DNA of 64,000 nucleotides, taken from Macrostomum lignano (lineage: Eukaryota). Where the stretch lies: contig NIVC01000587.1 of the NCBI GenBank assembly GCA_002269645.1, positions 186,001 through 250,000 of the forward strand, in the 5' to 3' direction. A program made the translations under genes and the position numbers. The notes below the pieces were generated by a model that saw only the letters and a program-made list of their open reading frames with translations, had not been told where the DNA came from and searched no databases. Shown here one piece after another: positions 1-59,393 of this stretch; within the stretch, counting starts at the first letter, position 1; each line of letters starts with the position of its first letter.

Positions 1-62
1 AATAGCAGAAACACTAGGGAGATGCCGTAGCCAATGTGACCGATGCTGTGAATCACCCTGAG
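1..62 (-). CDS. Class B1 GPCR exon encoding start of TM1 (truncated by window edge)
   Basis: After acceptor TAG reads LRVIHSIGHIGYGISLVFLL, matching the class B TM1 pattern (GY.xSL). Phase 0. Confidence 0.8.
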
Positions 63-131
63 CTACTCGATGGCAGTGTAGGAATGATGAAGTTGAACAA
101 AATTGATTAAAGTTGAACAGAGCTTGCCTAC

Positions 132-149
132 CTGAGGCACAAAAGTATG
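132..149 (-). CDS. Possible 18-nt micro-exon (HTFVPQ) of the GPCR stalk
   Basis: Strong donor CAG|GTAGGC at 131 opens a 69-nt intron ending in TAG at 63. The acceptor is a weaker AAG. Phase 0/0 preserves the frame. Confidence 0.35.
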
Positions 150-159
150 CTTCAGGTTG

Positions 160-610
160 GGCACGGTAATTAGCAGCCCCACCTCAGCCTGCACCTGATT
201 CAGGCACGGTAATTAGCAGCCCCACCTCAGCCCTCATCTGATTCGGGCACGATAATTAGCAGCCCCACCTCAGCCTGCACCTGATTCGGGCACGGTAATT
301 AGCAGCCCCACCTCAGCCTGCACCTGATTCGGGCACGGTAATTAGCAGCCCCACCTCAGCCTGCACCTGATTCGGGCACGGTAATTAGCAGCCCCACCTC
401 AGCCTACACCAGAGTCGGGCACGGTAATTAGCAGCCCCACCTCAGCCTGCACCTGATTCGGGCACGGTAATTAGCAGCCCCACCTCAGCCTACGCCAGAG
501 TCGGGCACGGTAATTAGCAGCCCCACCTCAGCCTACACCAGAGTCGGGCACGGTAATTAGCAGCCCCACCTCAGCCTACGCCAGAGTCGGGCACGGTAAT
601 TAGCAGCCCC
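160..610. repeat. 43-bp minisatellite, ~10 copies (GPCR intron)
   Basis: Unit gggcacggtaattagcagccccacctcagcctgcacctgattc. Confidence 0.95.
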
Positions 611-631
611 AAGCCTGGCCCAGCCGCTCAC

Positions 632-967
632 CAGTGCAGTGCTGGGCGGGTCGCTCACTGAGCAGGCGGTGAAATTGGTCCAGCCCTCTCCGCGGCCGGG
701 CTTGCCAGCCGGTCGGTGCCAGCTGCCATTGCCAAGGCAACGCCGCCAGGCGAGGCCCCGCCTGTTGAGCTCGTTGACATAGTCGGGACAGGACATGTAC
801 ACTCGAGTGCCAGCGGGAACTCCAGGCCAACAGATGGCGTTGTCGAAGGTTGGCAGACAGCCGGTGGCATTGGCGGCCATGGCGTCTTCAATCAGGGCCT
901 GACAGGTGCGGTTCTCCAGCTCCAAGCGCTTGTACTGCAGCATCTTGGACACCTTGGTCACTTGCAG
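632..967 (-). CDS. Class B1 GPCR, exon encoding HRM ectodomain 2
   Basis: LQVTKV...RTCQ...GCLPTFDNAICWPGVPAG..MSCPDYVNELNRRGLAWRRCLGNGSW...WTNFTAC closely parallels the PTH1R motif [24 protein letters not shown]. Acceptor ttccAG, donor GTGAGC, 336 nt, phase 0/0. Confidence 0.9.
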
Positions 968-2849
968 CTGGAATTTGGGAGGTTCAGCTGGTGAAAAAAT
1001 CCGCCATAGAAGCCTTGAAAGTGTTTATTTATGTACATGTAAGTTTTAAACAGCATGGGATTAATTATCTGTAGCAGTCAGTCAGTGTGTTTGCAATGGA
1101 GCAAGAAATCTGGGCAAACGCATATGGATTACAACGACACACGCTCACACAGCGGCCTTGACTCTCGTGGCCAATACGAGTATTTATGCACGGACACCTA
1201 CACGTTCGCAGCTGTATAATTAAAAAACAATATCATAGCTTGACTCTGCAAAATTCCGTTAAGATGAACTTTTTCTAGGCTTCTCTGAGCGAAGAATATT
1301 AAGTAACCAGGTGGCCTATTTGTCTTCTGTCTGCTTGCATTGCCCTTCCCTACCACCGACTGGCACTCAAATTCTGCTCAGCGTCCAAATGTTTTGCTTC
1401 CTTTTCCACTCTAGGGGAAAGCTCTGTCTATCAGCCTACCCATCTGCCTCAGATTTTTGCCTGTCTCATCTGAGACTCAGCTGAGAAGAAGAGACCGGAG
1501 CAACCAACCTATAGAGGTAGTGTAGAGGTAGGAGAGACTAGGATGATGGAGAGGCGGGGAGGCTGGGGATGGGCTATTTGTCGATTGACGTGAAGCAGAG
1601 GGAAGCGAGAGAGGCCCACCAGAGGCCCATCAGGTATTTGCTCGGCAAACTGGTCAGGCAAATGCTAAGCCGCAACGAAGAGCAAGAAAGGTCTTTTGGG
1701 AAGAAATTTGAATTGCGTAGAAGGAAACGGTGCGGACTGGAAGATGGGAAGCAGAAATTCTTTCGCTGCATCAATTTCTTGACAAGGCTCTGTTTGGCCT
1801 GGCTTAAATTCGGTGTGCTGAAGAGGTGCAGCGGGTGTCTGCCTGGGGTAGGGGGCTTCGGCCATCGCTGCTTCATCAGGATTCTGTTCGCCCGGGCACT
1901 CGCATGTGCCAAACACTTGCAAAGGAAAAGAAGTCGTTTATGAAGGAACTCGCATAGAAACAGATTGAGGATGGGGAAGAGAATTCTGATATTAGCAGTT
2001 GGAGAAGATCAAAGGCAAAATTATCGCGATTCTCGCCGTAGGCATATAGTAGACGAGCGTACAGAAACAGCCGCTCAGAGAACAGGGCAGGGAGGCTGAG
2101 CTTTCTTTCACGATGCAGACAGCAGGAAAGGTCAGTAGTTTCTGCAGGAGAAAGTTCTGGCTATCGAGAGGTGTACAGCTTGTCCTGACTTTCTGATCGT
2201 GGTCAGGCGAGGGTCGGACGCACTCTGCCTAGTTGCTCTCCAGCTGGTGCTGCAGTTAGGGGTGCGGTCTCGCTGCTAAAAAACCAGAGATACTAGAGGG
2301 TTGCCCGCAGCTCTCGTGTGAATATTTATTGATTGCACCCCCTTGGGAAGGGGGTGGCTATAGCTGCAAACTAAAGAGCCACTAGATAGGAAGTATCAAT
2401 TCGATACCTTCACCTGAGCTCTGCCTTTGAGCGGCTTTAAAAACAGGAGAGACGAATAGAAAGGGGAAATCGGCTCTCTGCCTAAACAGGTGGCATAATG
2501 CAAACACAACGGTCGGAGCTCTTAATCAAAAAAACTTCCTCTCTCTCCGACAGAGAACTCTCATCAGCTCTCTGGAGTTTTCCAAAGTCAACAAGTGGCT
2601 GTGGCCAGCGCAGTCAGTCAGTGCGGGACCAAGTTCCATTCTCTAACGATTAGTCTCGAGAGATTATGGGAACACTATGGCTCACTGGGATTTTCGGATT
2701 GGATTTGCGTGTTGCGGATTTGGGACTACTTTGATTGCTAATCTAGTCCTATCAAGAGTAGCAATATTCATTAGTGCTTTTCATACCTGCTAGTTAAAAA
2801 ATTAACTCTCATAGCAACCTCACACTACGCAGTGCTAGTTCTATTAATC

Positions 2850-3716
2850 AGAGTGCAACCACAGGGATATCAGAGTGCAATCCATAAAGATCAGAGTGCA
2901 ATCCATAGGGATCAGAGTGCAACCCCCAGGGATCAGAGTGCAACCCATATTGATCAGAGTGCAACCCCCAGGGATCAGAGTGCAACCCATAGGAATAAGA
3001 GTGCAATCCATAGAAATCAGAGTGCAATCCATAGGGATCAGAGTGCAATTCATAGGGATCAGAGTGCAATTCATAGGGATCAGAGTGCAATTCATAGGGA
3101 TCAGAGTGCAACCCACAGGGATCAGAGTGCAACCCCAGGGATCAGAGTGCAACCCATAGGAATAAGAGTGCAATCCATAGAAATCAGAGTGCAATCCATA
3201 GGGATCAGAGTGCAATTCATAGGGATCAGAGTGCAACCCACAGGGATCAGAGTGCAACCCCCAGGGATCAGAGTTCAACTCATATTGATCAGAGTGCAAC
3301 CCATAGGGATCAGAGTGCAATCCATAGGGATATCAGAGTGCAACCACAGGGATCAGAGTGCAATCCATAGGGATCAGAGTGCAATCCATAGAGATCAGAG
3401 TGCAATCCATAGGGATTAGAGTGCAATCCATAGGGATCAGAGTGCAATCCATAGAGATCAGAGTGCAATCCATAGGGATTAGAGTGCAATCCATAGAGAT
3501 CAGAGTGCAACCCCCAGGGATCAGAGTGCAACCCCCAGGGATCAGAGTGCAACCCACAGGGATCAGAGTGCAACCACAGGAATCAGAGTGCAACCACAGG
3601 AATCAGAGTGCAATCCATAGGGATCAGAGTGCAACCCACAGGGATCAGAGTGCAATCCATAGGGATCAGAGTGCAACTCACAGGGATCAGAGTGCAACCC
3701 ACAGAGATCAGAGTGG
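2850..3716. repeat. 21-bp minisatellite A, ~41 copies
   Basis: Unit gggatcagagtgcaatccata with variants. Confidence 0.95.
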
Positions 3717-3724
3717 GCCACTCT

Positions 3725-4785
3725 AGGAATCCAAGTGAGAATTCCAAGAATCCGCGTGCGAATTCCAAGAATCCGAGTGCGAATTCCAAGAATCCGAGTG
3801 CGAATTCCAAGAATCCGAGTGCGAATTCCAAGAATCTGAGTGCGAATTCAAAGAATCCGAGTGCGAATTCCAAGAATCCGAGTGCGAATTCCAAGAATCC
3901 GAGTGCGAATTCCAAGAATCCGAGTGCGAATTCCAAGAATCTGAGTGCGAATTCAAAGAATCCGAGTGCGAATTCCAAGAATCCGAGTGCGAATTCCAAG
4001 AATCTGAGTGCGAATTCAAAGAATCCGAGTGCGAATTCCAAGAATCCGAGTGCGAATTCCAAGAATCCGAGTGCGAATTCCAAGAATCCGAGTGCGAATT
4101 CCAAGAATTTGAGTGCGAGTTCAAAGAATCCGAGTGCGAATTCCAAGAATCTGAGTGCGAATTCAAAGAATCTGAGTGCGAATTCAAAGAATCCGAGTGC
4201 GAATTCCAAGAATCTGAGTGCGAATTCAAAGAATCCGAGTGCGAATTCCAAGAATCTGAGTGCGAATTCCAAGAATCCGAGTGCGAATTCCAAGAATCTG
4301 AGTGCGAATTCAAAGAATCCGAGTGCGAATTCCAAGAATCCGAGTGCGAATTCCAAGAATCTGAGTGCGAATTCAAAGAATCCGAGTGCGAATTCCAAGA
4401 ATCCGAGTGCGAATTCCAAGAATCCGAGTGCGAATTCCAAGAATCTGAGTGCGAATTCAAAGAATCCGAGTGCGAATTCCAAGAATCCGAGTGTGAATTC
4501 CAAGAATCTGAGTGCGAATTCAAATAATCCGAGTGTGAATTCAAAGAATCTGAGTGCGAATTCAAAGAATCCGAGTGCGAATTCAAAGAATCCGAGTGCG
4601 AATTCAAAGAATCCGAGTGCGAATTCAAAGAATCCGAGTGTGAATTCCAAGAATCTGAGTGCGAATTCAAAGAATCTGAGTGCGAATTCCAAGAATCCGA
4701 GTGCGAATTCAAAGAATCCGAGTGCGAATTCAAAGAATCCGAGTGTGAATTCCAAGAATCTGAGTGCGAATTCAAAGAATCCGAG
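3725..4785. repeat. 21-bp minisatellite B, ~50 copies
   Basis: Unit aagaatccgagtgcgaattcc, with GAATTC in nearly every unit. Confidence 0.95.
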
Positions 4786-4824
4786 TGCGAGAAGCGCAAG
4801 CCGCAACTTGGAAGAAAGACGCAC

Positions 4825-5253
4825 CCGTTTAGCCAAATAATCGAACGATTCCTTTGACCGGCAGGCGCTGTAGTTGCTATACGAGCTGCCAATCACCATT
4901 GACGCTGTCGAGTTACGCAACGCCGAAGCCACCGCCGGCGATGCAGCCGAGGCCGGGAATTCCCAACGGCCGTCTGGCTGGCAGCGACGCCAGGCGAAGC
5001 CGCCGCTCTCGAAGACAGGCGTCGGGCAGGGCACGCGGGCCTCGGCTCCCGCCGGGGTGCGCGGCCAGCAGGCGAATCCGTCGAATGCGGCCGGGCAGAA
5101 TCGCCGCCGAGACGACGAGGCGGAGCCGCCGTCCAGCGCGGCCAGCAAGCGGAACGCCGCCGATCGGACAGTCTGGACTGAGCAGGCCGCCTCCTGGCGC
5201 CGGAGCTCCTCTTCCGCTTCCGTTGGCGAGGAGGCGGCCACGGCTCCAGCCAG
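4825..5253 (-). CDS. Class B1 (secretin-family, PTH-receptor-like) GPCR, exon encoding hormone-receptor (HRM) ectodomain 1
   Basis: Translation LAGAVAASS...EAAC...RFCPAAFDGFACWPRTPAG..VPCP...FAWRRCQPDGRW...YSNYSAC has the six Cys and the Asp/Trp/Pro residues of the HRM fold. Acceptor ctcataccAG before 5253, donor GTGCGT after 4825, 429 nt, phase 0/0. The upstream signal-peptide exon was not located. Confidence 0.85.
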
Positions 5254-6345: not shown

Positions 6346-6880
6346 AACAATCAATCAATAGGGCGCCAGTCTGACCAATCAATCAATCAATAGGGTGCCA
6401 GTCTGATCAATCAATCAATCAATAGGGCGCCAGTCTGATCAATCAATCAATCAATAGGGCGCCAGTCTGATCAATCAATCAATCAATAGGGCGCCAGTCT
6501 GACCAATCAATCAATCAATAGGGCGCCAGTCTGATCAATCAATCAATCAATAGGGCGCCAGTCTGATCAATCAATCAATCAATAGGGCGCCAGTCTGATC
6601 AATCAATCAATAGGGCACCAGTCTGATCAATCAATCAATAGGGCGCCATCTGATCAATCAATCAATAGGGCGCCAGTCTGATCAATCAATCAATAGGGCG
6701 CCAGTCTGATCAATCAATCAATAGGGCGCCAGTCTGATCAATCAATCAATAGGGCGCCAGTCTGATCAATCAATCAATAGGGCGCCAGTCTGATCAATCA
6801 ATCAATAGGGCGCCAGTCTGATCAATCAATCAATAGGGCGCCAGTCTGATCAATCAATCAATAGGGCGCCAGTCTGATCA
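6346..6880. repeat. 28/32-bp minisatellite
   Basis: Unit (caat)n-agggcgccagtctgat with a variable number of CAAT. Confidence 0.95.
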
Positions 6881-7369: not shown

Positions 7370-7730
7370 CTGGTAATCTATGAGGATAATGGATTATCGA
7401 TGTTGTTAATCTATGAGAAATAATGGATTATCGATGTTGTTAATCTATGAGAAATAATGGATTATCGATGTTATTAATCTGTGAGGAATGATGGATTGTC
7501 GATGTTGTTAATCTATGAGAAATAATGGATTATCGATGTTGTTAATCTATGAGAAATAATGGATTATCGATGTTATTAATCTGTGAGGAATGATGGATTG
7601 TCGGTGTTGTTAATAAATGAGGAATAATGGATTATCGATGTTGTTAATCCATGAGAATGGATTATCGATGTTGTTAATCCATGAGAATGGATTATCGATG
7701 CTGTTAATCCATGAGAATGGATTATCAATT
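7370..7730. repeat. 34/30-bp minisatellite
   Basis: Unit ggattatcgatgttgttaatctatgagaaataat, shortening to 30 bp at the right end. Confidence 0.9.
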
Positions 7731-8099: not shown

Positions 8100-8812
8100 G
8101 TAGGATGGGAGAGGGAGAGGGCGGATGGGAGAGGGAGAGGGCGATTTGGAGAGCAGGGAGCGGATGAGAGAGGAGGGAGCGGGTGGAAGAGGGAGAGAGC
8201 GGATAAGAAAGGAGAGAGCGGATGGGAGAGGAGAGAGCGGATGGGAGAGGAGGGAGCGGGTGGAAGAGGGAGAGAGCGGATGGGAAAGGAGAGAGCGGAT
8301 GGGAGAGGAGAGAGCGGATGGGAGAGGAGGGAGAAGCTGGGAGATGAGGGAGCAAATGGGAGAGGAAGAGAGCGGATGGGAGAGGAGGGAACGGTTGGAA
8401 GAGGGAGAGAGCGGATGGGAGGGGAGGGAGCAAATGGGAGAGGAGGGAGCAAATGGGAGAGGAGGGAGCGGATGGGAGAGGAGGGAGCGGATGGGAGAGG
8501 AGGGAGCGGATGGGAGAGGAGGGAGCGGATGGGAGAGGAGGGAGCGGATGGGAGAGGAGGGAGCGGATGGGAGAGGAGGAAGCGGATGGGAGAGGAGGGA
8601 GCGAATGGGAGGTAGAGAGCGGATGGGAGAGGAGGGAGCGGATGTGAGAGGGAGAGAGCGGATGGGAGAGGAGGGAGCGGATGGGAGAGGGAGAGAGCGG
8701 ATGGGAGAGGAGGGAGCGGATGTGAGAGGGAGAGAGCGGGTGGGAGAGAGAGAGAGCGGATGGGAGAGGAGGGAGCGGGTGGGAGAGGTAGAGAGCGGAT
8801 GGGAGAGACAGC
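8100..8812. repeat. 19-bp purine-rich minisatellite
   Basis: Unit gagggagcggatgggagag. Confidence 0.9.
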
Positions 8813-9294
8813 AGGCTAAAGGAGAGAAGTTTTAAACAAATGCGCCGATAGCAGCAAGGATCGAAAATCTGAGTACCTGAGGTGGCTAGGAGAAGATAAG
8901 TTGGCAGGAATATAAAATTTGGGAATACAAAGATCACTCTTCTAAACTGAATCGGATTTCAACACCACAGATCTGCGCGGCCTCACCAAGCAGACTCCGC
9001 AGAGCTGATGAAGCAGCTGGGCGCAGAGCCAGAATCCTAAAATGCTTCGTCGCATTTCTGGCGCGTCTAAGACTTTATTGATTTTGTCAGAGTCCTTTAA
9101 GCGAATCTTGGTGAAGCGTTGCAGCTGATTGTGTCGAAGCCGAAATGCTTCATCCAAGCGTCTAAATCTGCCTTTAAAGCCAATCCACTCACTGACCAAT
9201 GGCGGACCGGGGGGTAGCTGAGAGGGTTTCGGGTTGGTTCTCACGGCGTGAACTATTAAAAAACAGGGATATGAGATCATTGGTTAAAATGGAG

Positions 9295-10240
9295 GTAACT
9301 GTGGTAGAAGGAGGAGCTGCAGGAGTAGATAGGGGTGCAGTGTTGTGGTAGAGGGAGGAGCTACAGGAGTAGATAGGGGTGCAGTGTTGTTGTAGAGGGA
9401 GGAGCTACAGGAGTAGATAGGGGTGAAGTGTAGTGGTAGAGGGAGGAGCTGCAGGAGTAGATAGGGTGAAGTGTAGTGGTAGAAGGAGGAGCTGCAGGAG
9501 TAGATAGGGGTGCAGTGTTGTGGTAGAGGGAGGAGCTACAGGAGTAGATAGGGGTGCAGTGTTGTGGTAGAGGGAGGAGCTACAGGAGTAGATAGGGGTG
9601 AAGTGTAGTGGTAGAGGGAGGAGCTACAGGAGTAGATAGGGGTGCAGTGTTGTGGTAGAGGGAGGAGCTACAGGAGTAGATAGGGGTGCAGTGTTGTGGT
9701 AGAGGGAGGAGCTACAGGAGTAGATAGGGGTGCAGTGTTGTGGTAGAGGGAGGAGCTACAGGAGTAGATAGGGGTGCAGTGTTGTGGTAGAGGGAGGAGC
9801 TACAGGAGTAGATAAGGGTGCAGTGTTGTGGTAGAGGGAGGAGCTACAGGAGTAGATAGGGGTGCAGTGTTGTGGTAGAGGGAGGAGCTACAGGAGTAGA
9901 TAGGGGTGCAGTGTTGTGGTAGAGGGAGGAGCTACAGGAGTAGATAGGGGTGCAGTGTTGTGGTAGAGGGAGGAGCTACAGGAGTAGATAAGGGTGCAGT
10001 GTTGTGGTAGAGGGAGGAGCTACAGGAGTAGATAGGGGTGCAGTGTTGTGGTAGAGGGAGGAGCTACAGGAGTAGATAGGGGTGCAGTGTTGTGGTAGAG
10101 GGAGGAGCTACAGGAGTAGATAGGGGTGCAGTGTTGTGGTAGAGGGAGGAGCTACAGGAGTAGATAGGGGTGCAGTGTTGTGGTAGAGGGAGGAGCTACA
10201 GGAGTAGATAGGGGTGCAGTGTTGTGGTAGAGGGAGGAGC
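9295..10240. repeat. 44-bp minisatellite, ~21 copies
   Basis: Unit ggtgcagtgttgtggtagagggaggagctacaggagtagatagg. Confidence 0.95.
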
Positions 10241-15205: not shown

Positions 15206-16473
15206 AATAAAGAATTGATTTAGTGAACTCTTGAATCTATTGTTAATTTTTATAGTGCAAAGTGTCAACAGATGTTAATTTGAAAAACAGGCAATACTAT
15301 TTGAAAACAACTTAATGGAATTAATTTTTGAGGTTGCTAATATTCAATACCAACCCACGCAATGCCCCAGCCCCAGCGCCTGAGAATTTTTGGCTGGCAA
15401 AAGTTCACCTGTGCACTACGAGACAGGATGATGGCAGCTCTGAGGTGGCAGCAGGGAAAGTGTGAGGCCATATGCAGAAAAATATCACGTGGCATCCCTA
15501 CAACAACCCTACAATAGGCAATTGCTTCTCCAGATGGCTACATTGGGGAAGAATTGCTTTAAAAAACTACCTGACATTTGTATATTCTGCAGTTGGCACT
15601 CAGCTGTTATCTGGAAGCCTTATATCGATTTTTTTCGCTATCCCTGACAAAGTTTTAACAAAAAAGCACTTCTTGCAGAAAATTTGCTCAATCGATCTGA
15701 ACGCCAATACAATCTGTAGATACAAATGAACATTAACTTTATTCCCTACTCAAGTGTGCTCAAGAGCCTGGCTGATAGTCAGCGGGACTGGCATGAGGAT
15801 TCTCTTTGGTCTGCTTTTTTTCACCCACTCCACCCCCAGTTTATGGATTTCTCCCAGAGCAACTGGTATTTTTATTGCACCGCATTGCAGAAGTTCAATG
15901 GGATTTATTTCCCAACCACAGGAAGCAGCCACCCCCACTCCTCTCCGGTTCTGCTCTGGTGGGCCAACAGTGAGGGGAACCCTGGGGCATGGGGGGGGTG
16001 GTGGGGAAAAGCCAAAGCACAATAGACTACCTCTAATCCCATTCTCCCGTCTCTCAACCCCACCTCTCCCTCTGTCCCATCTGCTCCTACGGTAGCCTAC
16101 CCTCAGGACCCCCGGGTTGCCATGGCAACACCTGCTGGAGGAGGGCGAGAGAGAAGCTCTGTTGGAAAGTATGAGACAGGCAGGCAGTGGAGCTGGGGTG
16201 GGAGGGTGAGGCGGCGGGACAGAGCGGGGCAATACGGAAGCAATGCAAAGCAATGGACAGGCAGGCAGCAAAGCCGGGAGCAAATGCCAGCAAGAGGAGC
16301 AGGAAGAGCCGCTCTCGCAGACGCATAAATTCACTGAGACAGCGCAAGTGTCCGGGGAAGGCAAACAAAAAAACTGACAAAGAAACTTCCTCAGCCGCAG
16401 AAGGTCACAGCGCGGCATCCTGCCTGACCGGAGAGACACTTAATTAAACTTGACGTCCGCCGTTCCTCAACAG

Positions 16474-17571
16474 ACCGTTGCCATTCAACCCGCTGCGTCC
16501 GCCAGCAGCGCCGTCCCCATTGCTAGCCGGTGGAAGGCCGCCAGCAGCGGCTGCTGCGAGAACAGTCAGCAGCGGCAGCTGGCGGAGACGACGGCAGTTT
16601 TTGATGTCCAAGAGGATGACGAACAACAGAAGCGGCAGCAGCCGGAGGTGCAGGACCTGCCAGCAGGCCTGACCGAGTACTCGCACCAGGTGGGCGGCAA
16701 GGGCCTGCTGTTCTGGCGGAAGTCGCCGATTCTGTCCGGCCAGTGCGGCGATCTGTACAAGCCGGTGCAGCGGCCGCCAAAGGGACCTCGCGAGGTGGCC
16801 TTCTATCGAGCGGCGGCCGCCGCCGGCAGCGATGCCGACTCGCCAGTGTTGGAGGGACTGCGGCCGTTCCTTGCTGACTTCCTCGGGCTGTACAGATGTC
16901 GGCAGGGAGGCGGGCAGCTGTACCTGGGACTCGGCGACGCCTTGAAGCACCTTCGCAGACCGTGCGTGATGGACTGCAAGATGGGCGGCCTGTCAGCCCC
17001 GCCGGGCGCCCCGGCCTCCAAGCGGCTGCTGCAGCGGGCGATGTACTCGCACCGAGGCCAGCTGGGCTTCGTCATCACGGGCTTCCGGGTGCCGCTGATA
17101 GGCCGATCGGAGCCTCGAGTCTACTCCATCTTGCACGGCCGCTCCCTGGATGCTGAGGCCGTGTACAGCAAGGGCTTCCTGCCGTTCCTGGCCGCGGCTG
17201 GGTCTCCCGGCCGAGCCGGCGCCGTGGCCTCCGCAGTGGCCGCCAGACTGGAGCAGCTGGACGCCTGGTTCGCTGTGCAGCGGTCCTTCCGGTTCTACGC
17301 CAGCTCGCTGCTCATCGCCTACGAGGCGGCGCCTGTGCAGCAGCCGCAGGAAGATTCTGACTGCTCCGGTTTCGCTGTAGTGGTCCGAGCTGTCGATTTC
17401 GCTCACGTGCACCGGTGCCGAGCCGATACGTCGTCAGAAAAAGTCAGCGGCGATGAAGCCACTTCCACAGATGCAGGCGGCGGCACAGATGAGAACTACC
17501 GTGCCGGCCTGGCCAGGCTTATCGCCTACTTCAAGCGGGCCTCTGCCGATCTTAGCGGGACCACAGCTTGA
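16474..17571 (+). CDS. IPMK: Inositol polyphosphate multikinase (IPK family), main coding exon
   Basis: Motifs HQVGG, REVAFY, PCVMDCKMG (PxxxDxKxG), FYASSLLIAYE (SSLL), VDFAH (IDF) and DENYRAGL in correct order. Acceptor ttcctcaacAG at 16473, stop TGA at 17569-17571. No in-frame ATG upstream of the catalytic core, so the start lies on another exon. Confidence 0.9.
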   Translation, partial: TVAIQPAASASSAVPIASRWKAASSGCCENSQQRQLAETTAVFDVQEDDEQQKRQQPEVQDLPAGLTEYSHQVGGKGLLFWRKSPILSGQCGDLYKPVQRPPKGPREVAFYRAAAAAGSDADSPVLEGLRPFLADFLGLYRCRQGGGQLYLGLGDALKHLRRPCVMDCKMGGLSAPPGAPASKRLLQRAMYSHRGQLGFVITGFRVPLIGRSEPRVYSILHGRSLDAEAVYSKGFLPFLAAAGSPGRAGAVASAVAARLEQLDAWFAVQRSFRFYASSLLIAYEAAPVQQPQEDSDCSGFAVVVRAVDFAHVHRCRADTSSEKVSGDEATSTDAGGGTDENYRAGLARLIAYFKRASADLSGTTA

Positions 17572-23197: not shown

Positions 23198-23528
23198 GTT
23201 TTATGTTTACTATTATCCTTCACCTACTTTTTAAACTCTAGGCAAAAAAAGTTTAAGGAAACGCATCTTACGAGCTGAAACATGCCAAGCTACATTGCAA
23301 TGCTTCTTCGTATGTACATTTACATGACCAAAAAAGCAATTTATATTTATATTCCTTCTTCTGATGCACTATAAATTCTTGTCTGTCCAGAACTGAACAT
23401 GCCCTAAAACTCCTACGAGTAAACTGGAGTCTGATAAACTGAGAAAAAAAATTAATTCGACAGAAAATTGAGAAAAGTGGCAGAAAGATGAACAAACTGG
23501 CCGTTCAACAGTGTTAGAAAAAAACCAC

Positions 23529-25457
23529 ACAGCCATCATCCCATCAGAGAAGTGCAGCAATGATCCAGGCACCCATTCAGCCATCATCCCATCAGAGAAG
23601 TGCAGCAATGATCCAGGCACCTATCCAGCCATCATCCCATCAGAGAAGTGCAGCAATGATCCAGGCACCCATTCAGCCATCATCCCATCAGAGAAGTGCA
23701 GCAATGATCCAGGCACCTATCCAGCCATCATCCCATCAGAGAAGTGCAGCAATGATCTAGGCACCCATCCAGCCATCATCCCATCAGAGAAGTGCAGCAA
23801 TGATCCAGGCACCCATTCAGCCATCATCCCATCAGAGAAGTGCAGCAATGATCCAGGCACCTATCCAGCCATCATCCCATCAGAGAAGTGCAGCAATGAT
23901 CCAGGCACCCATTCAGCCATCATCCCATCAGAGAAGTGCAGCAATGATCCAGGCACCTATCCAGCCATCATCCCATCAGAGAAGTGCAGCAATGATCTAG
24001 GCACCCATCCAGCCATCATCCCATCAGAGAAGTGCAGCAATGATCCAGGCACCCATTCAGCCATCATCCCATCAGAGAAGTGCAGCAATGATCCAGGCAC
24101 CTATCCAGCCATCATCCCATCAGAGAAGTGCAGCAATGATCTAGGCACCTATCCAGCCATCATCCCATCAGAGAAGTGCAGCAATGATCTAGGCACCTAT
24201 CCAGCCATCATCCCATCAGAGAAGTGCAGCAATGATCTAGGCACCTATCCAGCCATCATCCCATCAGAGAAGTGCAGCAATGATCTAGGCACCTATCCAG
24301 CCATCATCCCATCAGAGAAGTGCAGCAATGATCCAGGCACCTATCCAGCCATCATCCCATCAGAGAAGTGCAGCAATGATCTAGGCACCTATCCAGCCAT
24401 CATCCCATCAGAGAAGTGCAGCAATGATCTAGGCACCCATCCAGCCATCATCCCATCAGAGAAGTGTAGCAATGATCTAGGCACCCATCCAGCCATCATC
24501 CCATCAGAGAAGTGCAGCAATGATCTAGGCACCTATCCAGCCATCATCCCATCAGAGAAGTGCAGCAATGATCTAGGCACCTATCCAGCCATCATCCCAT
24601 CAGAGAAGTGCAGCAATGATCTAGGCACCTATCCAGCCATTATCCCATCAGAGAAGTGCAGCAATGATCTAGGCACCTATCCAGCCATCATCCCATCAGA
24701 GAAGTGCAGCAATGATCTAGGCACCTATCCAGCCATCATCCCATCAGAGAAGTGCAGCAATGATCTAGGCACCTATCCAGCCATCATCCCATCAGAGAAG
24801 TGCAGCAATGATCTAGGCACCTATCCAGCCATCATCCCATCAGAGAAGTGCAGCAATGATCTAGGCACCCATCCAGCCATCATCCCATCAGAGAAGTGCA
24901 GCAATGATCTAGGCACCCATCCAGCCATCATCCCATCAGAGAAGTGCAGCAATGATCTAGGCACCTATCCAGTCATCATCCCATCAGAGAGGTGCAGCAA
25001 TGATCTAGGCACCCATCCAGCCATCATCCCATCAGAGAAGTGCAGCAATGATCTAGGCACCCATCCAGTCATCATCCCATCAGAGAGGTGCAGCAATGAT
25101 CTAGGCACCTATCCAGCCATCATCCCATCAGAGAAGTGCAGCAATGATCTAGGCACCCATCCAGTCATCATCCCATCAGAGAGGTGCAGCAATGATCTAG
25201 GCACCCATCCAGCCATCATCCCATCAGAGAAGTGCAGCAATGATCTAGGCACCCATTCAGCCATCATCCCATCAGAGAAGTGCAGCAATGATCTAGGCAC
25301 CTATCCAGCCATTATCCCATCAGAGAAGTGCAGCAATGATCTAGGCACCCATCCAGCCATCATCCCATCAGAGAAGTGCAGCAATGATCTAGGCACCTAT
25401 CCAGCCATCATCCCATCAGAGAAGTGCAGCAATGATCTAGGCACCCATCCAGCCATT
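23529..25457. repeat. 48-bp minisatellite, ~40 copies
   Basis: Unit agccatcatcccatcagagaagtgcagcaatgatctaggcacctatcc. Confidence 0.97.
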
Positions 25458-25574
25458 ACTTTTGGGCTCAATTGCATGAAGTCACAATCCAATAACAACC
25501 CAGTGTCAGCACACCCTGACTGTCTAGTCACCTGTCAGTCATTAAACTGAGGTCCAGAAACTCGCCAGCTCCGG

Positions 25575-27041
25575 TCAGGGATGTCTGACAACAGCCCGCA
25601 ATTCGTCGTACTCATCGGCCAGGTCGCAGGTGTGGACGTCCTCCAAGTCGCCGCCGAGAGTCCAAGCGGATCGGCGATCGATCTCGGCGCAGGAGTCCCT
25701 GCCGCCGCTGCTGCCGCCGCTGCTGACTGGGTTTCTCCGGACGCCGCCGCTGCCGCTGCTTGGGCTTCTGCTCTGTTTGCTGCTGCCGATGCTTCGACTT
25801 TCTTCGCTGCCAATCGGCGGAGTCAGCTGGTCGAGCAGCAGCGCCAAGAAGTTGTACGACCCAACGGATGATGCGGTCGTTGAGGCAGACTGCCGATGGG
25901 GTAGCGCTGGAGGCTGGGGAAGAGGAGGCGGTTGGGCATTCAAAGATTCAGAAATCGGTGGAGGCATTGTGGACGAACGAGAGGGCGGCTGAAGAGGCGG
26001 TGGAGGCAGAGCGGATGCTGGCTGCTGGGATGGTGATGGTGCAGGCATCAGCTCTGACGGTGTTTTTGAAGACTGAGTCAACAAAGTCAACGCCGTGGTT
26101 GGAATTTGCGAATCGTTCTGAGATGCCTCGGAGATCGGAGATGCAGCATCCAGGCTGGCACTGGCCAGGGAGAATCTGGTGCAGACGCTCAGCGGCGCCA
26201 GGACGATCGGACCGGACGGGCCGAGCGGAATCGAGGCGGGCACTGACTTTGGCGCCGTTTGACCCGACGGCGACTCTCCGACGGCGGAATCGACAGGCCT
26301 GATCAGCTGGCGGCTTCGGTCCGGCTCGCAGCTGCTGCAGCTGGTGGGGAGCTCGGAACTTTCCCAGTCGGTGCAAAACAGCTCTGAGTTTGTTATAACC
26401 AGCAGGGGCACCCACTGGTCTTGCGATGGCGGCGGCTGCGGCTGCTGCTTTGGTGGCTGAGGTGGCAGCGGCTGCTGCTTTTGTGGCTGAGGTGACAGCG
26501 GCTGCTGCTTTGGTGGCTGAGGTGGCAGCGGCTGCTGCTTTGGTGGCTGAGGTGACAGCGGCTGCTGCTTTGGTGGCTGAGGTGGCAGCGGCTGCTGCTT
26601 TGTTGGCTGAGGTGGCAGCGGCTGCTGCTTTGGTGGCTGAGGTGACAGCGGCTGCTGCTTTGGTGGCTGAGGTGACAGCGGCTGCTGCTTTGGTGGCTGA
26701 GGTGACAGCGGCTGCTGCTTTGGTGGCTGAGGCGATAGCGGCTGCTGCTTTGGTGGCTGCGGCGATAGCGGCTGCTGCTTTGGTGCCTGAGGCGGTAGCG
26801 GCTGCTGCTTTGGTGGCTGAGGCGGCAGCGGCTGTTGCGGTGGTAGTTGAAGAGCCGACGGCTCGGGCGGAAGAGGTTCAGCCACCAAGGACGCCTCAGT
26901 GGAGGCGCCGGTCGCCGCTGACAGGCGACAGATGGCGGCACGGAAAGCGGCGGCAGCTTCGGGCGGAAGACCGGCCAGGTGGCTGCCGAGGCGCTGCAGC
27001 TCGGAGGCGAACTCGCTGGAGCCGTCGCGGCTCTGGTCCAT
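25575..27041 (-). CDS. Pro/Gln/Ser-rich low-complexity protein of unknown function (~488 aa)
   Basis: GC-rich ORF from gccATGG at 27041 to TGA. About 400 nt is repeat, while the flanking unique coding sequence stays open. A probable 5'UTR intron (GTAAGT at 27189 to tandem AG acceptors at ~27059) supports this ATG. Confidence 0.65.
   Translation of the reverse strand: MDQSRDGSSEFASELQRLGSHLAGLPPEAAAAFRAAICRLSAATGASTEASLVAEPLPPEPSALQLPPQQPLPPQPPKQQPLPPQAPKQQPLSPQPPKQQPLSPQPPKQQPLSPQPPKQQPLSPQPPKQQPLSPQPPKQQPLPPQPTKQQPLPPQPPKQQPLSPQPPKQQPLPPQPPKQQPLSPQPQKQQPLPPQPPKQQPQPPPSQDQWVPLLVITNSELFCTDWESSELPTSCSSCEPDRSRQLIRPVDSAVGESPSGQTAPKSVPASIPLGPSGPIVLAPLSVCTRFSLASASLDAASPISEASQNDSQIPTTALTLLTQSSKTPSELMPAPSPSQQPASALPPPPLQPPSRSSTMPPPISESLNAQPPPLPQPPALPHRQSASTTASSVGSYNFLALLLDQLTPPIGSEESRSIGSSKQSRSPSSGSGGVRRNPVSSGGSSGGRDSCAEIDRRSAWTLGGDLEDVHTCDLADEYDELRAVVRHP
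26425..26830 (-). repeat. 30-bp coding repeat (QQPL[S/P]PQPPK x ~13)
   Basis: In-frame within the 25575-27041 ORF. Confidence 0.9.
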
Positions 27042-27424
27042 GGCTGCAGCTGCTGCTACTAGAGGAAACAACCTCCGCTCTTATTGCAATGATCCTCATG
27101 AATTCATCCGATTTGGCTTTTCGTTGGAATTTCAAATCCAACTCCAACTCCAGCCAGAATTTGTTTAACTCTTCCCAGTCAGAACTTACGCCCACTGTTT
27201 AAGCTGCTATGTTCTTCGTCTTTCTATTGCGCCTTTTTGATCAAGAAAGAAATCTATTTACTTCAAGGAAGTTTGTGAAGATTGGAAATAACTTAAAAAC
27301 GGATCTTTGCATTTTTTGTCTATGAGCAAGCCTTAGACGTATAACCAGAGCAGCTGAGCGGTTTAGTGTCCAAATTTAAACGTAATAAGTACTTGGTTCG
27401 GCAAGTGTGTGCTGCGCGATTGTA

Positions 27425-30400
27425 TAGAGAGGTGTGGTAGAGAGGTGTGGTAGAGAGGTGTGGTAGAGAGGTGTGGTAGAGAGGTGTGGTAGAGAGGTGT
27501 GGTAGAGAGGTGTGGTAGAGAGGTGTGGCAGAAAGGTGTGGTAGAGAGGTATGGCGGAGAGATGTGGTAGAGAGGTATGGCGGAGAGATTTGGTAGAGAG
27601 GTGTGGTAGAGAGGTGTGGCAGAGAGGTGTGGTAGAGAGGTGTGGTAGAGAGGTGTGGTAGAGAGGTGTGGTATAGAGGTGTGGTAGAGAGGTGTAGTAG
27701 AGAGGTGTGGTAGAGAGGTGTGGTAGAGAGGTATGGCAGAGAGATGTGGTAGAGAGGTGTGGTAGAGAGGTGTGGTAGAGAGATGTGGTAGAGAGGTGTG
27801 GTAGAGAGGTGTGGTAGAGAGGTGTGGTAGAGAGGTGTGGTAGAGAGGTATGGCAGAGAGATGTGGTAGAGAGGTGTGGTAGAGAGATGTGGTAGAGAGA
27901 TGTGGTAGAGAGGTGTGGTAGAGAGGTGTGGTAGAGAGGTGTGGTAGAGAGGTGTGGTAGAGAGGTGTGGTAGAGAGGTGTGGTAGAGAGGTGTGGTAGA
28001 GAGGTGTGGTAGAGAGATGTGGTAGAGAGGTGTGGTAGAGAGGTGTGGTAGAGAGGTGTGGTAGAGAGGTGTGGCGGAGAGATTTGGTAGAGAGGTGTGG
28101 TAGAGAGGTGTGGCGGAGAGATTTGGTAGAGAGGTGTGGTAGAGAGGTGTGGCGGAGAGATTTGGTAGAGAGGTGTGGTAGAGAGGTGTGGTAGAGAGGT
28201 GTGGTAGAGAGGTGTGGTAGAGAGGTGTGGTAGAGAGATGTGGTAGAGAGGTGTGGTAGAGAGGTGTGGTAGAGAGATGTGGTAGAGAGGTGTGGTAGAG
28301 AGGTGTGGTAGAGAGGTGTGGTAGAGAGGTGTGGCGGAGAGATTTGGTAGAGAGGTGTGGTAGAGAGGTATGGCGGAGAGATTTGGTAGAGAGGTGTGGT
28401 AGAGAGGTGTGGCAGAGAGGTGTGGTAGAGAGGTGTGGTAGAGAGGTGTGGTAGAGAGGTGTGGTAGAGAGGTGTGGTAGAGAGGTGTGGTAGAGAGATG
28501 TGGTAGAGAGGTGTGGTAGAGAGGTATGGCAGAGAGATGTGGTAGAGAGGTGTGGTAGAGAGATGTGGTAGAGAGATGTGGTAGAGAGGTGTGGTAGAGA
28601 GGTGTGGTAGAGAGGTGTGGTAGAGAGGTGTGGTAGAGAGGTGTGGTAGAGAGGTGTGGTAGAGAGGTGTGGTAGAGAGGTGTGGTAGAGAGATGTGGTA
28701 GAGAGGTGTGGTAGAGAGGTGTGGTAGAGAGGTGTGGTAGAGAGGTGTGGTAGAGAGGTGTGGTAGAGAGGTGTGGTAGAGAGGTGTGGCGGAGAGATTT
28801 GGTAGAGAGGTGTGGTAGAGAGGTGTGGTAGAGAGGTGTGGTAGAGAGATGTGGTAGAGAGGTGTGGTAGAGAGGTGTGGTAGAGAGGTGTGGTAGAGAG
28901 GTGTGGTAGAGAGATTTGGTAGAGAGGTGTGGTAGAGAGGTGTGGCGGAGAGATTTGGTAGAGAGGTGTGGTAGAGAGGTATGGCGGAGAGATTTGGTAG
29001 AGAGGTGTGGTAGAGAGGTGTGGCAGAGAGGTGTGGTAGAGAGGTGTGGTAGAGAGGTGTGGTAGAGAGGTGTGGTAGAGAGGTGTGGTAGAGAGGTGTG
29101 GTAGAGAGATGTGGTAGAGAGGTGTGGTAGAGAGGTATGGCAGAGAGATGTGGTAGAGAGGTGTGGTAGAGAGATGTGGTAGAGAGATGTGGTAGAGAGG
29201 TGTGGTAGAGAGGTGTGGTAGAGAGGTGTGGTAGAGAGGTGTGGTAGAGAGGTGTGGTAGAGAGGTGTGGTAGAGAGGTGTGGTAGAGAGGTGTGGTAGA
29301 GGGATGTGGTAGAGAGGTGTGGTAGAGAGGTGTGGTAGAGAGGTGTGGTAGAGAGGTGTGGTAGAGAGGTGTGGTAGAGAGGTGTGGTAGAGAGGTGTGG
29401 CGGAGAGATTTGGTAGAGAGGTGTGGTAGAGAGGTGTGGCGGAGAGATTTGGTAGAGAGGTGTGGTAGAGAGGTGTGGTAGAGAGGTGTGGTAGAGAGGT
29501 GTGGTAGAGAGGTGTGGTAGAGAGGTGTGGTAGAGAGGTGTGGTAGAGAGGTGTGGCGGAGAGATTTGGTAGAGAGGTGTGGTAGAGAGGTGTGGCGGAG
29601 AGATTTGGTAGAGAGGTGTGGTAGAGAGGTATGGCGGAGAGATTTGGTAGAGAGGTGTGGTAGAGAGGTGTGGCAGAGAGGTGTAGTAGAGAGGTGTGGC
29701 AGAGAGGTGTAGTAGAGAGGTGTAGTAGAGAGGTGTGGTAGAGAGATTTGGTAGAGAGGTGTGGTAGAGAGGTGTGGTAGAGAGGTGTGGTAGAGAGGTG
29801 TGGTAGAGAGGTGTGGTAGAGAGGTGTGGTAGAGAGGTATGGCAGAGAGATGTGGTAGAGAGGTGTGGTAGAGAGATGTGGTAGAGAGATGTGGTAGAGA
29901 GGTGTGGTAGAGAGGTGTGGTAGAGAGGTGTGGTAGAGAGGTGTGGTAGAGAGGTGTGGTAGAGAGGTGTGGTAGAGAGGTGTGGTAGAGAGGTGTGGTA
30001 GAGAGATGTGGTAGAGAGGTGTGGTAGAGAGGTGTGGTAGAGAGGTGTGGTAGAGAGGTGTGGTAGAGAGGTGTGGTAGAGAGGTGTGGTAGAGAGGTGT
30101 GGCGGAGAGATTTGGTAGAGAGGTGTGGTAGAGAGGTGTGGCGGAGAGATTTGGTAGAGAGGTGTGGTAGAGAGGTGTGGTAGAGAGGTGTGGTAGAGAG
30201 GTGTGGTAGAGAGGTGTGGTAGAGAGATGTGGTAGAGAGGTGTGGTAGAGAGGTGTGGTAGAGAGGTGTGGTAGAGAGGTGTGGTAGAGAGGTGTGGTAG
30301 AGAGGTGTGGTAGAGAGGTGTGGCGGAGAGATTTGGTAGAGAGGTGTGGTAGAGAGGTGTGGCGGAGAGATTTGGTAGAGAGGTGTGGTAGAGAGGTATG

Positions 30401-31416
30401 GCGGAGAGATTTGGTAGAGAGGTGTGGTAGAGAGGTGTGGCAGAGAGGTGTAGTAGAGAGGTGTGGCAGAGAGGTGTAGTAGAGAGGTGTAGTAGAGAGG
30501 TGTGGTAGAGAGGTGTGGTAGAGAGGCTTGGTAGAGAGGTGTGGTAGAGAGGTGTGGTAGAGAGGTGTGGTAGAGAGGTGTGGTAGAGAGGTATGGCAGA
30601 GAGATGTGGTAGAGAGGTGTGGTAGAGAGATGTGGTAGAGAGATGTGGTAGAGAGGTGTGGTAGAGAGGTGTGGTAGAGAGGTGTGGTAGAGAGGTGTGG
30701 TAGAGAGGTGTGGTAGAGAGGTGTGGTAGAGAGGTGTGGTAGAGAGGTGTGGTAGAGAGATGTGGTAGAGAGGTGTGGTAGAGAGGTGTGGTAGAGAGGT
30801 GTGGTAGAGAGGTGTGGTAGAGAGGTGTGGTAGAGAGGTGTGGTAGAGAGGTGTGGTAGAGAGGTGTGGTAGAGAGGTGTGGCGGAGAGATTTGGTAGAG
30901 AGGTGTGGTAGAGAGGTGTGGCGGAGAGATTTGGTAGAGAGGTGTGGTAGAGAGGTATGGCGGAGAGATTTGGTAGAGAGGTGTGGTAGAGAGGTGTGGC
31001 AGAGAGGTGTAGTAGAGAGGTGTAGTAGAGAGGTGTAGTAGAGAGGTGTAGTAGAGAGGTGTGGTAGAGAGTTGTGGTAGAGAGTTGTGGTAGAGAGGTG
31101 TGGTAGAGAGGTGTGGTAGAGAGGTGTGGCGGAGAGATTTGGTAGAGAGGTGTGGTAGAGAGGTGTGGCGGAGAGATTTGGTAGAGAGGTGTGGTAGAGA
31201 GGTGTGGTAGAGAGGTGTGGTAGAGAGGTGTGGTAGAGAGGTGTGGTAGAGAGATGTGGTAGAGAGGTGTGGTAGAGAGGTGTGGTAGAGAGGTGTGGTA
31301 GAGAGGTGTGGTAGAGAGGTGTGGTAGAGAGATGTGGTAGAGAGGTGTGGCAGAGAGGTGTGGTAGAGAGGTGTGGTAGAGAGGTGTGGTAGAGAGGTGT
31401 GGTAGAGAGGTGTGGT
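27425..31416. repeat. 13-bp satellite, ~300 copies
   Basis: Unit gagaggtgtggta with recurring variant blocks. Confidence 0.98.
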
Positions 31417-31442
31417 AAAGAGGAGAGTAGAGCGAAAAGAGA

Positions 31443-32062
31443 GCAATCCATTCTATTCCTGTATTGATAAGCCAGACTAGCAATCCATTCTATTCCTGTA
31501 TTGATAAGATAGACTAGCAATCCATTCTATTCCTGTATTAATAAGCTAGACTAGCAATCCATTCTATTTCTGTATTAATAAGCTAGACTAGCAATCCATT
31601 CTATTCCTGTATTAATAAGCTAGACTAGCAATCCATTCTATTCCTGTATTGATAAGATAGACTAGCAATCCATTCTATTCCTGTATTAATAAGCTAGACT
31701 AGCAATCCATTCTATTTCTGTATTAATAAGCTAGACTAGCAATCCATTCTATTTCTGTATTAATAAGCTAGACTAGCAATCCATTCTATTTCTGTATTTA
31801 TAAGCTAGACTAGCAATCCATTCTATTCCTGTATTGATAAGCCAGACTAGCAATCCATTCTATTCCGGCATTGATAAGCCAGACTAGCAATCCAATCTAT
31901 TCCGGCATTGATAAGCCAGACTAGCAATCCATTCTATTCCGGCATTGATAAGCCAAACTAGCAATCCATTCTATTCCGGCATTGATAAGCCAGACTAGCA
32001 ATCTATTCTATTCCGGCATTGATAAGCTAAACTAGCCATCCATTCTACTCCTGTATTGATAA
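31443..32062. repeat. 37-bp minisatellite, block 1
   Basis: Unit gactagcaatccattctattcctgtattgataagcta. Confidence 0.95.
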
Positions 32063-58085: not shown

Positions 58086-59393
58086 TCACTCCAGATCGGC
58101 ATCAGTGATGGACTCGCCCTTGTACTGCGAGTGACGAATACCGAAGCTGCAGCTAGGGGCCGACTTGCGGGTGAAGTTGTAGCCCTGAAGATGAGAATGA
58201 GGGCGTTTTGATTTAGCAATCGGCTTTATTATCCACGATATCGAAATGCTTGACTGCCTGAAAGCCGCCCGAGTGGCTATTTTCAGACAAGCGGGCTAGC
58301 CAATGGCTGGGCAGGTAAGGGGGTGGGTGCAAGCGGGCTTAGCCAATGGCTGGGCAGGGAAGGGGGTAGGTGCAAGCGGGCTAGCCAATGGCTGAGCAGG
58401 GAAGGAGTGGGTGTGGAAAGAAAGTAGACTAGCCAATGGTTGTCTCAGCGACGAGGTATTTACGCTTGAGTCTTTTAATTCTAATTTGAATTCCAGCTGT
58501 TTGGAATATCTGCCACTGATGTCTGCCAAATATAACTCACCGGCTCAGGTGAGTGGGCTCCGGGACCCGGCTTGGTGGTGCTGTCACCCGGCATGGCGTT
58601 GCGGCTGGTCATGCTGAAGGCAGGCGGGGAGTTCTTGTACTTGCCAGGCGAGGTCACACTGTAGGCGCCTGGGCCCGGCGTCTGCGGCGGGAGAAACAAA
58701 AGAATTATTTGATATTCTCTTCAACCATAAGCAAAGATCGTAAAAAATTAAAAGACAAGACACCTTCTGCAGATCCTCGTGGAAGCCGCCAATCTTGGAG
58801 CGGCCAGTCAGCGACGCAGCTGGGGCGGATTTTTTCTCGCTGCGCAGAGTCTTGCCCATCATCGGGTCAGGTGTGTAGGCGTTGGGTCCTGTAGATTGAG
58901 TGTGTAAGTTTGTATAACAACGAATTGTTACCCACAGATTTCCCAAATCCTAAGTGGCTATTGATTTACTAGCTATCGCTCTCTGACGCTCACCGGGGGT
59001 GTTGTCAGTGCGGAATTCCATGTGGCGGACGCCGAAGCTGTAGGCCGGTGCCTTGCTGTAGATCTCCTTGTTGGTGTTGTCGGTCTTGTAGGCGCCGGGT
59101 CCGGGAGCCGAGAACATTGTGCCATCCTTGGGCCGGCCGTACAGCGAGTACTGCGGAGTTCCGTCCTTGCCATCGCGGAAAATTCTCGCACCGGGCAGGT
59201 AGCAAGGTCCCGGGCTCGAGTCGTCGCTGAACTTTCCGTGTCGCATACCGAATTGATAGGCGGGGCCGCGGTTGTGCACGGAGCGGGGGTCGTGGTGTGG
59301 CTGGCCCACCAAGCCGGGCAGGCCGTATTTGGGGCCCGGGCTGCTGTACATGGCGGCTACGGGACCGCGCGGCTTTGTGTAGTTGTACACCAT
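58086..59393 (-). CDS. ODF3: Outer dense fiber protein 3 / CIMAP1-like SHIPPO (PGPG.Y) repeat protein, 254 aa, 4 exons: 59393-58994, 58888-58764, 58681-58541, 58184-58086
   Basis: Repeated SPGPKY/SPGPCY/APGPGAY/TPGPNAY/TPGPGAY/KPGPGAH motifs with APAYSFG-type linkers. All three introns (105, 82, 356 nt) are GT-AG with matching phases. The spliced CDS is 765 nt ending ...SFGIRHSQYKGESITDADLE*. Confidence 0.93.
58290..58440. repeat. ~43-bp repeat, 3 copies, in ODF3 intron 3
   Basis: Unit gcgggctagccaatggctgggcagg...gtgcaa. Confidence 0.8.

Follow-up and report, generated by a model that had tools for sequence, protein, structure and literature searches.

Two tandem hormone-binding ectodomain exons before a single seven-transmembrane core in PTH-receptor-like genes of Macrostomum lignano

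We describe a gene for a class B1 (secretin-family) G-protein-coupled receptor (GPCR) at the left edge of a 64,000-nucleotide stretch of the genome of the flatworm Macrostomum lignano (contig NIVC01000587.1, positions 186,001 to 250,000, hereafter the window; coordinates on the whole contig are prefixed C587). Two neighbouring minus-strand exons of this gene, a distal exon A and a membrane-proximal exon B, each encode a complete hormone-binding (HRM) ectodomain ahead of one seven-transmembrane (7TM) core, and the same layout recurs in four paralog groups of the assembly. The duplicated A-B layout is confirmed as a conserved family trait that is real at the level of the gene, which bears out the proposal, made in an earlier sequence-only reading of the window, of an intact, duplicated ligand-capture module before one 7TM core; recurrence in the paralog groups supports it more strongly than that reading could. 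With regard to the mRNA, we consider it reasonably probable that A and B are included together by default, giving a receptor with two ectodomains and a division of labour between them; what we infer in this reading is joint inclusion, the exon for the signal peptide and the roles assigned to A and B.

Results

Exon A occupies window positions 4825 to 5253 (minus strand, 143 aa) and exon B positions 632 to 967 (minus strand, 112 aa), both with stop-free translations. Against the Pfam HRM model (PF02793, cut-off 26.2 bits) exon A scored 49.7 bits (E 4.9e-13) and exon B 61.1 bits (E 1.4e-16), with nearly the whole model covered in each case, and the spliced A plus B piece returned two PF02793 stretches with 99 bits in total. 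There are exactly six cysteines in A and in B, together with the FD..CWP, CP, RRC and G.W core, and the two exons are 40% identical over 70 aa; the expectation of two complete six-Cys HRM exons thus held up in the Pfam scan. The matches of A and B to receptor profiles cannot be chance, and a chance open reading frame (ORF) in GC-rich DNA was ruled out by the Pfam E-values and by conservation in 12 loci. In exon A an N-terminal helix that carries Cys1 and a beta core are present, about 30 Ala/Ser-rich residues are inserted between Cys5 and Cys6, and the tail reads SFDYLAKR, while exon B (CLPTFDNAICWP...CPDYVNE...AWRRC..NGSW..GWTNFTAC) is strongly like the parathyroid hormone (PTH) receptor PTH1R. 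With a slash marking each border, the exon ends read from the sequence are ccag/CTGGCT...AAACGG/gtgcgt for A and ccag/CTGCAA...GCACTG/gtgagc for B. Both lengths are multiples of 3, the AG/GT borders are canonical and the phase is 0/0 in both, such that A and B would splice in frame (...FDYLAKR/LQVTKVSK..., junction peptide ...TTGGCTAAACGG/CTGCAAGTGACC...) over an intron of 3857 nt, confirming the in-frame junction across 3.9 kb that had been read from the sequence. In this intron (window 968 to 4824, minus strand) Tandem Repeats Finder (TRF) marked two satellite arrays of period 21 bp, one at 2847-3715 with 41 copies and one at 3727-4790 with 51 copies, and some 1.9 kb is unique sequence.

A single set of transmembrane (TM) exons follows. 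The TM1 exon starts in the window at 1 to 62 on the minus strand (LRVIHSIGHIGYGISLVFLL...; acceptor tag at 65-63, phase 0) and continues past the left edge, and the intron between exon B and TM1 (63 to 631, minus strand) consists mainly of a 43-bp satellite (159-611, 10.5 copies; TRF). The window holds the 5' half of the gene; what remains, from the end of TM1 through the stop codon, is found beyond the left edge at C587:185974-176656 and was assembled by tblastn and by eye from 30 kb of DNA left of the window, with manual splicing. Its exons encode the end of TM1, TM2, TM3/4, TM4-ECL2-TM5, TM5-ICL3, TM6 and TM7-tail (ECL and ICL, extracellular and intracellular loop), and a small last exon ends at about C587:176656. 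GT/AG borders are found throughout, class B motifs are present (RLHC..N.IH.NLF, the ECL1/ECL2 cysteines and an FQG..V...YCF-like stretch, FQGFFVSLLFCFVN), and matches to 7tm_2 (PF00002) fall just left of the window at C587:185278-185668. When all ORFs of both strands from positions -10000 to +12000 were searched with a profile built from 42 class B1 receptors, A matched profile positions 44-142 and B positions 38-143, i.e. the same ectodomain segment, and the TM1 to TM7 exons were matched once each and in collinear order. Over this range the profile found no receptor-like or TM-like ORF between A and B and none that was receptor-like upstream of A, and an ORF scan of the A-B intron found no first exon combining an ATG, a hydrophobic stretch and a phase-0 donor. 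The two scans agree with the original observation that the exons lead into TM1 with neither a TM exon nor a new signal peptide between them. Derivation of the two HRMs from two tandem receptor genes was ruled out, as there is a single TM set only.

The signal peptide is likely encoded by a putative exon 1 at window 8987 to 9055 (minus strand), which has a start codon, the signal-peptide-like sequence MRRSILGFWLCAQLLHQLCGVCL and a phase-0 donor (TTG/gtgagg). Among ORFs with an ATG, a hydrophobic stretch and a good phase-0 donor in the ~10 kb upstream of A, this was the sole one resembling a signal peptide, and if spliced to exon A it would read MRRSILGFWLCAQLLHQLCGVCL-LAGAVAASSPTEAEEE. The candidate is 100% identical in the copy of the locus on contig C330, which thus provides no independent check of it. 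Minisatellites crowd the introns of the receptor gene at window positions 159-611, 2847-3715, 3727-4790, 6348-6880, 7374-7717, 8103-8807 and 9300-10240, with periods of 43, 21, 21, 28, 34, 19/39 and 44 bp in that order. Both of the adjacent 21-bp arrays are open in the frame of exon A, which places exon A inside a 564-aa stop-to-stop ORF, a trap for gene predictors.

An HRM search across the whole 764-Mb assembly, with 7tm_2 matches mapped alongside, showed nearly all strong HRM matches to be same-strand pairs, each then followed by 7tm_2 matches. They form four paralog groups with 12-13 loci and 2-4 near-identical copies per group: group 1 on C587/C330/C1406, to which the window gene belongs (C587), group 2 on C875/C894/C754, group 3 on C61/C1134/C391 and group 4 on C1814/C4081/C493(/C4709). 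Compared as stretches of ~3 kb, the loci have the order A-type, B-type, TM1, TM2 in 4/4 groups, with TM3/4 too wherever the fetched DNA extends that far, and all A and B exons of the four groups have phase-0 AG/GT borders at homologous positions. Exon A of the window matched the A-type domains of the other groups with 87.8, 65.1 and 48.9 bits versus 57.4, 45.4 and 37.4 bits for their B-type domains, and exon B matched their B-type domains with 100, 81 and 69 bits versus 40, 42 and 38 bits for their A-type domains. Because A best matches A and B best matches B, the exon was duplicated before the gene family split four ways, and A and B have since been retained in every lineage. All eight domain types (four A and four B) have exactly six cysteines, and mean identity is 39% among A-types, 45% among B-types and 35% between A and B. 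The exon ends carry motifs specific to each type, with ELR..EA.C at the start of A, a hydrophobic-acidic tail on A and T.VS...Q..RL.LER..C at the start of B.

These comparisons bear on whether exon A is still in use. If exon A were a pseudo-exon in decay, left over from the duplication and no longer spliced into mRNA, then the greater divergence of A-types relative to B-types (39% versus 45% mean identity), the degenerate A exon of the C1814 group (about 29 bits) and the low-complexity insert between Cys5 and Cys6 would all be expected. Against such decay, an open frame, six cysteines and the core D/W/P/R residues are kept in four groups and 12 loci at ~30-45% identity between groups, the splice sites are intact, the core is confidently predicted by AlphaFold2 (AF2), and exon A shows 0 differences in 429 nt among three copies whose flanking introns differ. 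Among near-identical copies in general there were fewer changes in exon A than in the flanking introns, and the proportion of nonsynonymous differences (pN) was lower than that of synonymous differences (pS) in 5/6 of the exon-A comparisons with any difference, the counts being very small and too few for a decisive dN/dS. On this evidence a pseudo-exon is extremely improbable.

The whole locus of the window gene is present in three copies (C587:186-195 kb, C330:298-310 kb and C1406:152-161 kb), in which exon A DNA is identical, exon B differs by one amino acid and introns are a few percent diverged. Either a recent duplication on a large scale or haplotypes left uncollapsed by the assembly would fit this.

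The paralogs also inform the idea that exon A is a gene product of its own, i.e. a secreted HRM-A decoy or binding protein made by read-through into the intron, with the receptor beginning at B, either from a promoter that was not seen or through trans-splicing. The C61 and C1814 groups have a stop codon 2-4 codons past the exon A donor, which would yield a compact HRM if the donor were left unspliced, and trans-splicing is widespread in M. lignano. In the window gene, by contrast, read-through of the A donor stays open for 413 more codons through the satellites (the 564-aa ORF), and the phase-0 GT donor is at a homologous position in 4/4 groups. Exon B, moreover, has no start codon before its domain, its first in-frame Met being inside the N-terminal helix with no signal peptide after it, and the ORF scan found no signal-peptide exon in the A-B intron. 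We regard a separate secreted product as very unlikely.

By its sequence the window gene falls with the PTH-receptor-like class B1 GPCRs. Among PDB entries, exon B together with the TM core matched PTH1R best (235 bits, E 1e-68), followed by PTH2R (187), VIPR1 (184), GIPR (182) and CALCR (140), in keeping with the earlier description of the membrane-proximal copy as PTH1R-like. The distal copy had been described as divergent with a long Ala/Ser insert; it is indeed the more divergent and the insert is predicted to be disordered, yet exon A alone also matched the PTH2R and PTH1R ectodomains first (37 and 31 bits), and it is likewise PTH-receptor-like rather than an unrelated HRM. In a library of 1.84 billion proteins the nearest named relatives were mollusc PTH/PTHrP receptor-like or secretin receptor-like proteins, a Schistosoma receptor and a lamprey PTH1R-like protein, all of which have a single HRM near the N-terminus. 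In a tree of the TM region, which sampled two subfamilies only, the window gene was sister to a Schistosoma PTH-receptor-like protein with 97/96 support, and both fell among the PTH receptors, which a 100/100 split divides from the calcitonin-type, multi-HRM clade. Both an HRM ectodomain and a 7tm_2 core, the marks of class B1, are present; membership of the calcitonin/CLR clade is contradicted by the TM-region tree and by the lower CALCR score, and the two in-frame HRM exons depart from the single HRM usual in the PTH-receptor-like subfamily. The TM6 exon (C587:179023-179174) departs from the P-x-x-G kink motif, reading STSVLVIVFG with Ile for Pro and the Gly kept. This sequence is common to the window gene and its Schistosoma relative (S. 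intercalatum, P0015), as against (I/M/V)P(L/M/T)F(G/A) in 18 other receptors, and I-V-F-G may reflect an alteration of the activation hinge that is specific to flatworms; the deviation is a lineage variant and no ground for exclusion from class B1. The W-x-N-Y-S motif was dropped as a PTH-type marker since it occurs in CLR too. It has been reported before Cys6 in Tribolium cluster B receptors and human PTH1R (PMC3961327), and an HRM domain has been reported in Schistosoma SMP170560 (Zamanian et al. 2011, PMC3261222).

The structure of the two-ectodomain protein was predicted with AF2, the full-length model being built on P0003 (UniRef A0A1I8IK20), the public M. lignano protein discussed below, with 41 homologues. 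Confidence by predicted local distance difference test (pLDDT) was 91-97 for HRM-B, 78-91 for the beta core of HRM-A and ~80-90 for the TM bundle; it fell below 50 in the insert between Cys5 and Cys6 of A and in the linker from A to B, with a predicted TM-score (pTM) of 0.51. The model shows two domains, each predicted to be folded, on a flexible tether. Modelled alone with its paralogs, exon A had a mean pLDDT of 72.6 (core 83-90) and formed a long N-terminal helix and two beta hairpins. A Foldseek search with this model placed PTH1R ectodomains at the top (E 4e-5) and other class B1 ectodomains next; the TM-score was 0.69, normalised to the ectodomain-only entries 8d51_A and 7uzo_A, and the root-mean-square deviation to 8flu was 2.0 A over 127 columns. 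Exon A is accordingly predicted to fold like a PTH1R ectodomain. Structure prediction, which the sequence-only reading had proposed, gave two domains predicted to be folded and no confident interface between them.

Elsewhere in the window, a 375-aa frame at 16444-17571 (plus strand) matches inositol polyphosphate kinase (PF03770, 99 bits) and marks a neighbour gene on the strand opposite to the receptor. A 371-aa frame at 62094-63209 (plus strand) is of the piggyBac type (DDE_Tnp_1_7, 179 bits), a transposon or domesticated copy, and sperm-tail PG-rich (SHIPPO) repeats at 58950-59651 (minus strand; PF07004, 37.8 bits) are probably an exon of an ODF3-like gene. Minisatellite arrays of ~4.2 kb (27320-31526, minus strand) and ~2.1 kb (23472-25550, plus strand) have several frames open, with ORFs of ~1389 and ~692 aa, and there is a strong GC skew over 28-32 kb of the window. 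Another frame at 25575-27080 (minus strand, 501 aa) has a Pro/Gln-rich repeat block (PQPPKQQPLS...) between non-repetitive flanks; it had no Pfam match and is possibly a real low-complexity coding exon.

Discussion

The patterns detected are consistent with tandem duplication of a whole-ectodomain exon in a PTH-receptor-like gene of M. lignano, which would have preceded the expansion of the gene family. In class B1 receptors generally, the textbook two-domain model has the ectodomain capture the peptide and the core activate. Under the reading we favor, the default mRNA would comprise the signal-peptide exon, A, B and TM1-7, and the resulting protein would have two flexibly linked HRM ectodomains and one 7TM core. 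HRM-B, the copy with the higher conservation and the greatest likeness to PTH1R, most likely would perform the canonical capture of the C-terminal helix of a PTH-like peptide, after which the N-terminus of the peptide would enter the 7TM core. HRM-A, which retains the full set of disulfides and core residues and is faster evolving than HRM-B, most likely would be an accessory domain that adjusts how ligands are captured or selected, or one to which a second ligand or a partner binds. The roles put forward in the sequence-only reading, binding of two ligands or an autoinhibitory cap, are hypothetical, and its interpretation is supported in part.

Receptors with more than one HRM are not confined to Macrostomum, and the uniqueness implied by the sequence-only reading was overstated. 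The database search for two HRMs plus 7tm_2 that it had suggested did find this architecture: among the best 150 representatives, eight besides P0003 had at least two HRM matches, and Pfam confirmed HRM-HRM-7tm_2 in five arthropods, i.e. Cloeon (a mayfly), Ischnura (a damselfly), Penaeus (a shrimp), Centruroides (a scorpion) and Nymphon (a sea spider), and HRMx4-7tm_2 in a teleost, the damselfish Stegastes. These precedents are RefSeq models, and all are named by their source as calcitonin or calcitonin gene-related peptide (CGRP) type, the arthropod ones as 'calcitonin gene-related peptide type 1 receptor-like'. A pufferfish calcitonin receptor is likewise said to have four hormone-binding domains, reportedly in work by Nag et al. 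from 2007 in Gen Comp Endocrinol entitled 'Fish calcitonin receptor has novel features'; our literature search found no open-access text describing multi-HRM calcitonin receptors. No two-HRM receptor of PTH type or from another flatworm was found in databases or searchable literature. The multi-HRM calcitonin-type receptors thus share the architecture of the window gene, with tandem complete HRMs before one 7tm_2 core, but belong to a different subfamily, as the TM-region tree and the CALCR and PTH1R scores indicate. Conversely, the protostome PTH-receptor-like cluster B (Cardoso et al. 2014, PMC3961327), Schistosoma SMP170560 and vertebrate PTH1R/PTH2R are like the window gene in the 7TM core and HRM-B, but those examined have one HRM where the Macrostomum genes have two. 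Models from Haliotis rubra (XP_046553576, P0008) and Tachypleus (XP_076330114, P0103) also have two HRM matches per protein; they are arranged as HRM-TM-HRM-TM with 7tm_2 in 2-3 stretches, whereas the two HRMs of the window gene have no TM exon between them, and these models look like neighbouring receptor genes fused by annotation.

A tree built from HRM domains only (29 domains, 105 columns) joined the B-type exons of the four groups in one clade (97/84) and left the A-types in a polytomy with arthropod HRM1 domains, on long branches. The simplest reading is that the Macrostomum duplication is an independent gain, convergent with the calcitonin-type cases, because in the TM-region tree the window gene stands apart from these cases and the Macrostomum genes have single-HRM outgroups on all sides; the resolution of the HRM-only tree is too low for proof of this.

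The sole close database protein is P0003, which is identical to the window gene over the exons they share. It begins precisely at the exon A acceptor and joins A to B, then ignores the donor of exon B and translates into the 43-bp satellite (VSGWAGLGAANYRARLWCRL, window 560-632), skipping TM1, and it carries an extra segment of 33 aa (C587:178104-178226), likely a false exon, that splits the FQG motif before TM7. P0003 needs re-annotation. For annotation more broadly, in-frame intronic satellites badly affect flatworm gene models of this receptor family.

An alternative explanation for two adjacent ectodomain exons is that they are used one at a time, as mutually exclusive exons or with one as a skipped cassette, giving single-ectodomain isoforms that would differ in ligand selectivity. 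Mutually exclusive exons commonly arise from tandem exon duplicates, and A and B are homologous neighbours, 40% identical and equal in phase (0/0), each encoding a full ectodomain from the N-terminal helix to the tail after Cys6. Splices of exon 1 to B and of A to TM1 are both in frame, and A could plausibly sit straight on TM1, since its tail SFDYLAKR with LRVIHSIGHIGYG resembles the PTH1R stalk before TM1, which is a lead and not a test. The homologue searches also returned no transcript with both A and B. On the other hand, no mechanism that would enforce exclusivity is visible: with both exons included the frame is kept, and the intron spans 3.9 kb, so neither nonsense-mediated decay nor a steric block would enforce it, RNA pairing being outside this check. 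The difference in length (143 versus 112 aa) and the type-specific ends in 4/4 groups fit better with fixed positions, the arthropod and fish RefSeq multi-HRM models include their HRMs in tandem, and P0003 joins A to B. Alternative use of A and B is possible and we consider it rather unlikely.

Several observations weigh against joint inclusion of A and B in a two-ectodomain receptor. First is that no RNA-derived sequence over the A-B junction was recovered in homologue searches with the full model, the junction piece or the four-paralog alignment; apart from an unrelated fragment from a snail, these searches yielded just two UniRef models, P0003 and P0004, both flawed. P0003 being a flawed automatic model, its A-B join is weak evidence. 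Secondly, A only, B only and A plus B are all in frame, so the genome cannot tell which isoform is dominant. The A exon of the C1814 group lacks the G.W motif after Cys5 and reaches ~29 bits only, a decay that hints at relaxed constraint on A. Furthermore, the full-length AF2 model offered no confident A-B interface (linker pLDDT below 50, pTM 0.51), and the putative signal-peptide exon was drawn from sequence pattern alone.

Natural class B1 receptors with extra ectodomains are rare, and the records found were only in the calcitonin-type branch. The Macrostomum genes represent what appears to be a second origin, independent of the first, within the PTH-receptor branch, and four paralog groups have retained it. 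A further step would be that the Macrostomum PTH-type lineage independently evolved an obligatory second ectodomain with its own function, either as a RAMP-like selectivity module or as a second peptide site. We regard this as unlikely; if it were true, an obligatory, functional HRM-A would turn these receptors into sensors that are bivalent or respond to two ligands, and they would replicate the multi-HRM calcitonin receptors by convergence. M. lignano is amenable to RNA interference and transgenesis, and these genes may offer a tractable system for the role of an extra ligand-capture domain in affinity, selectivity, autoinhibition or partner binding, with bearing on exon duplication as a reshaper of receptor pharmacology.

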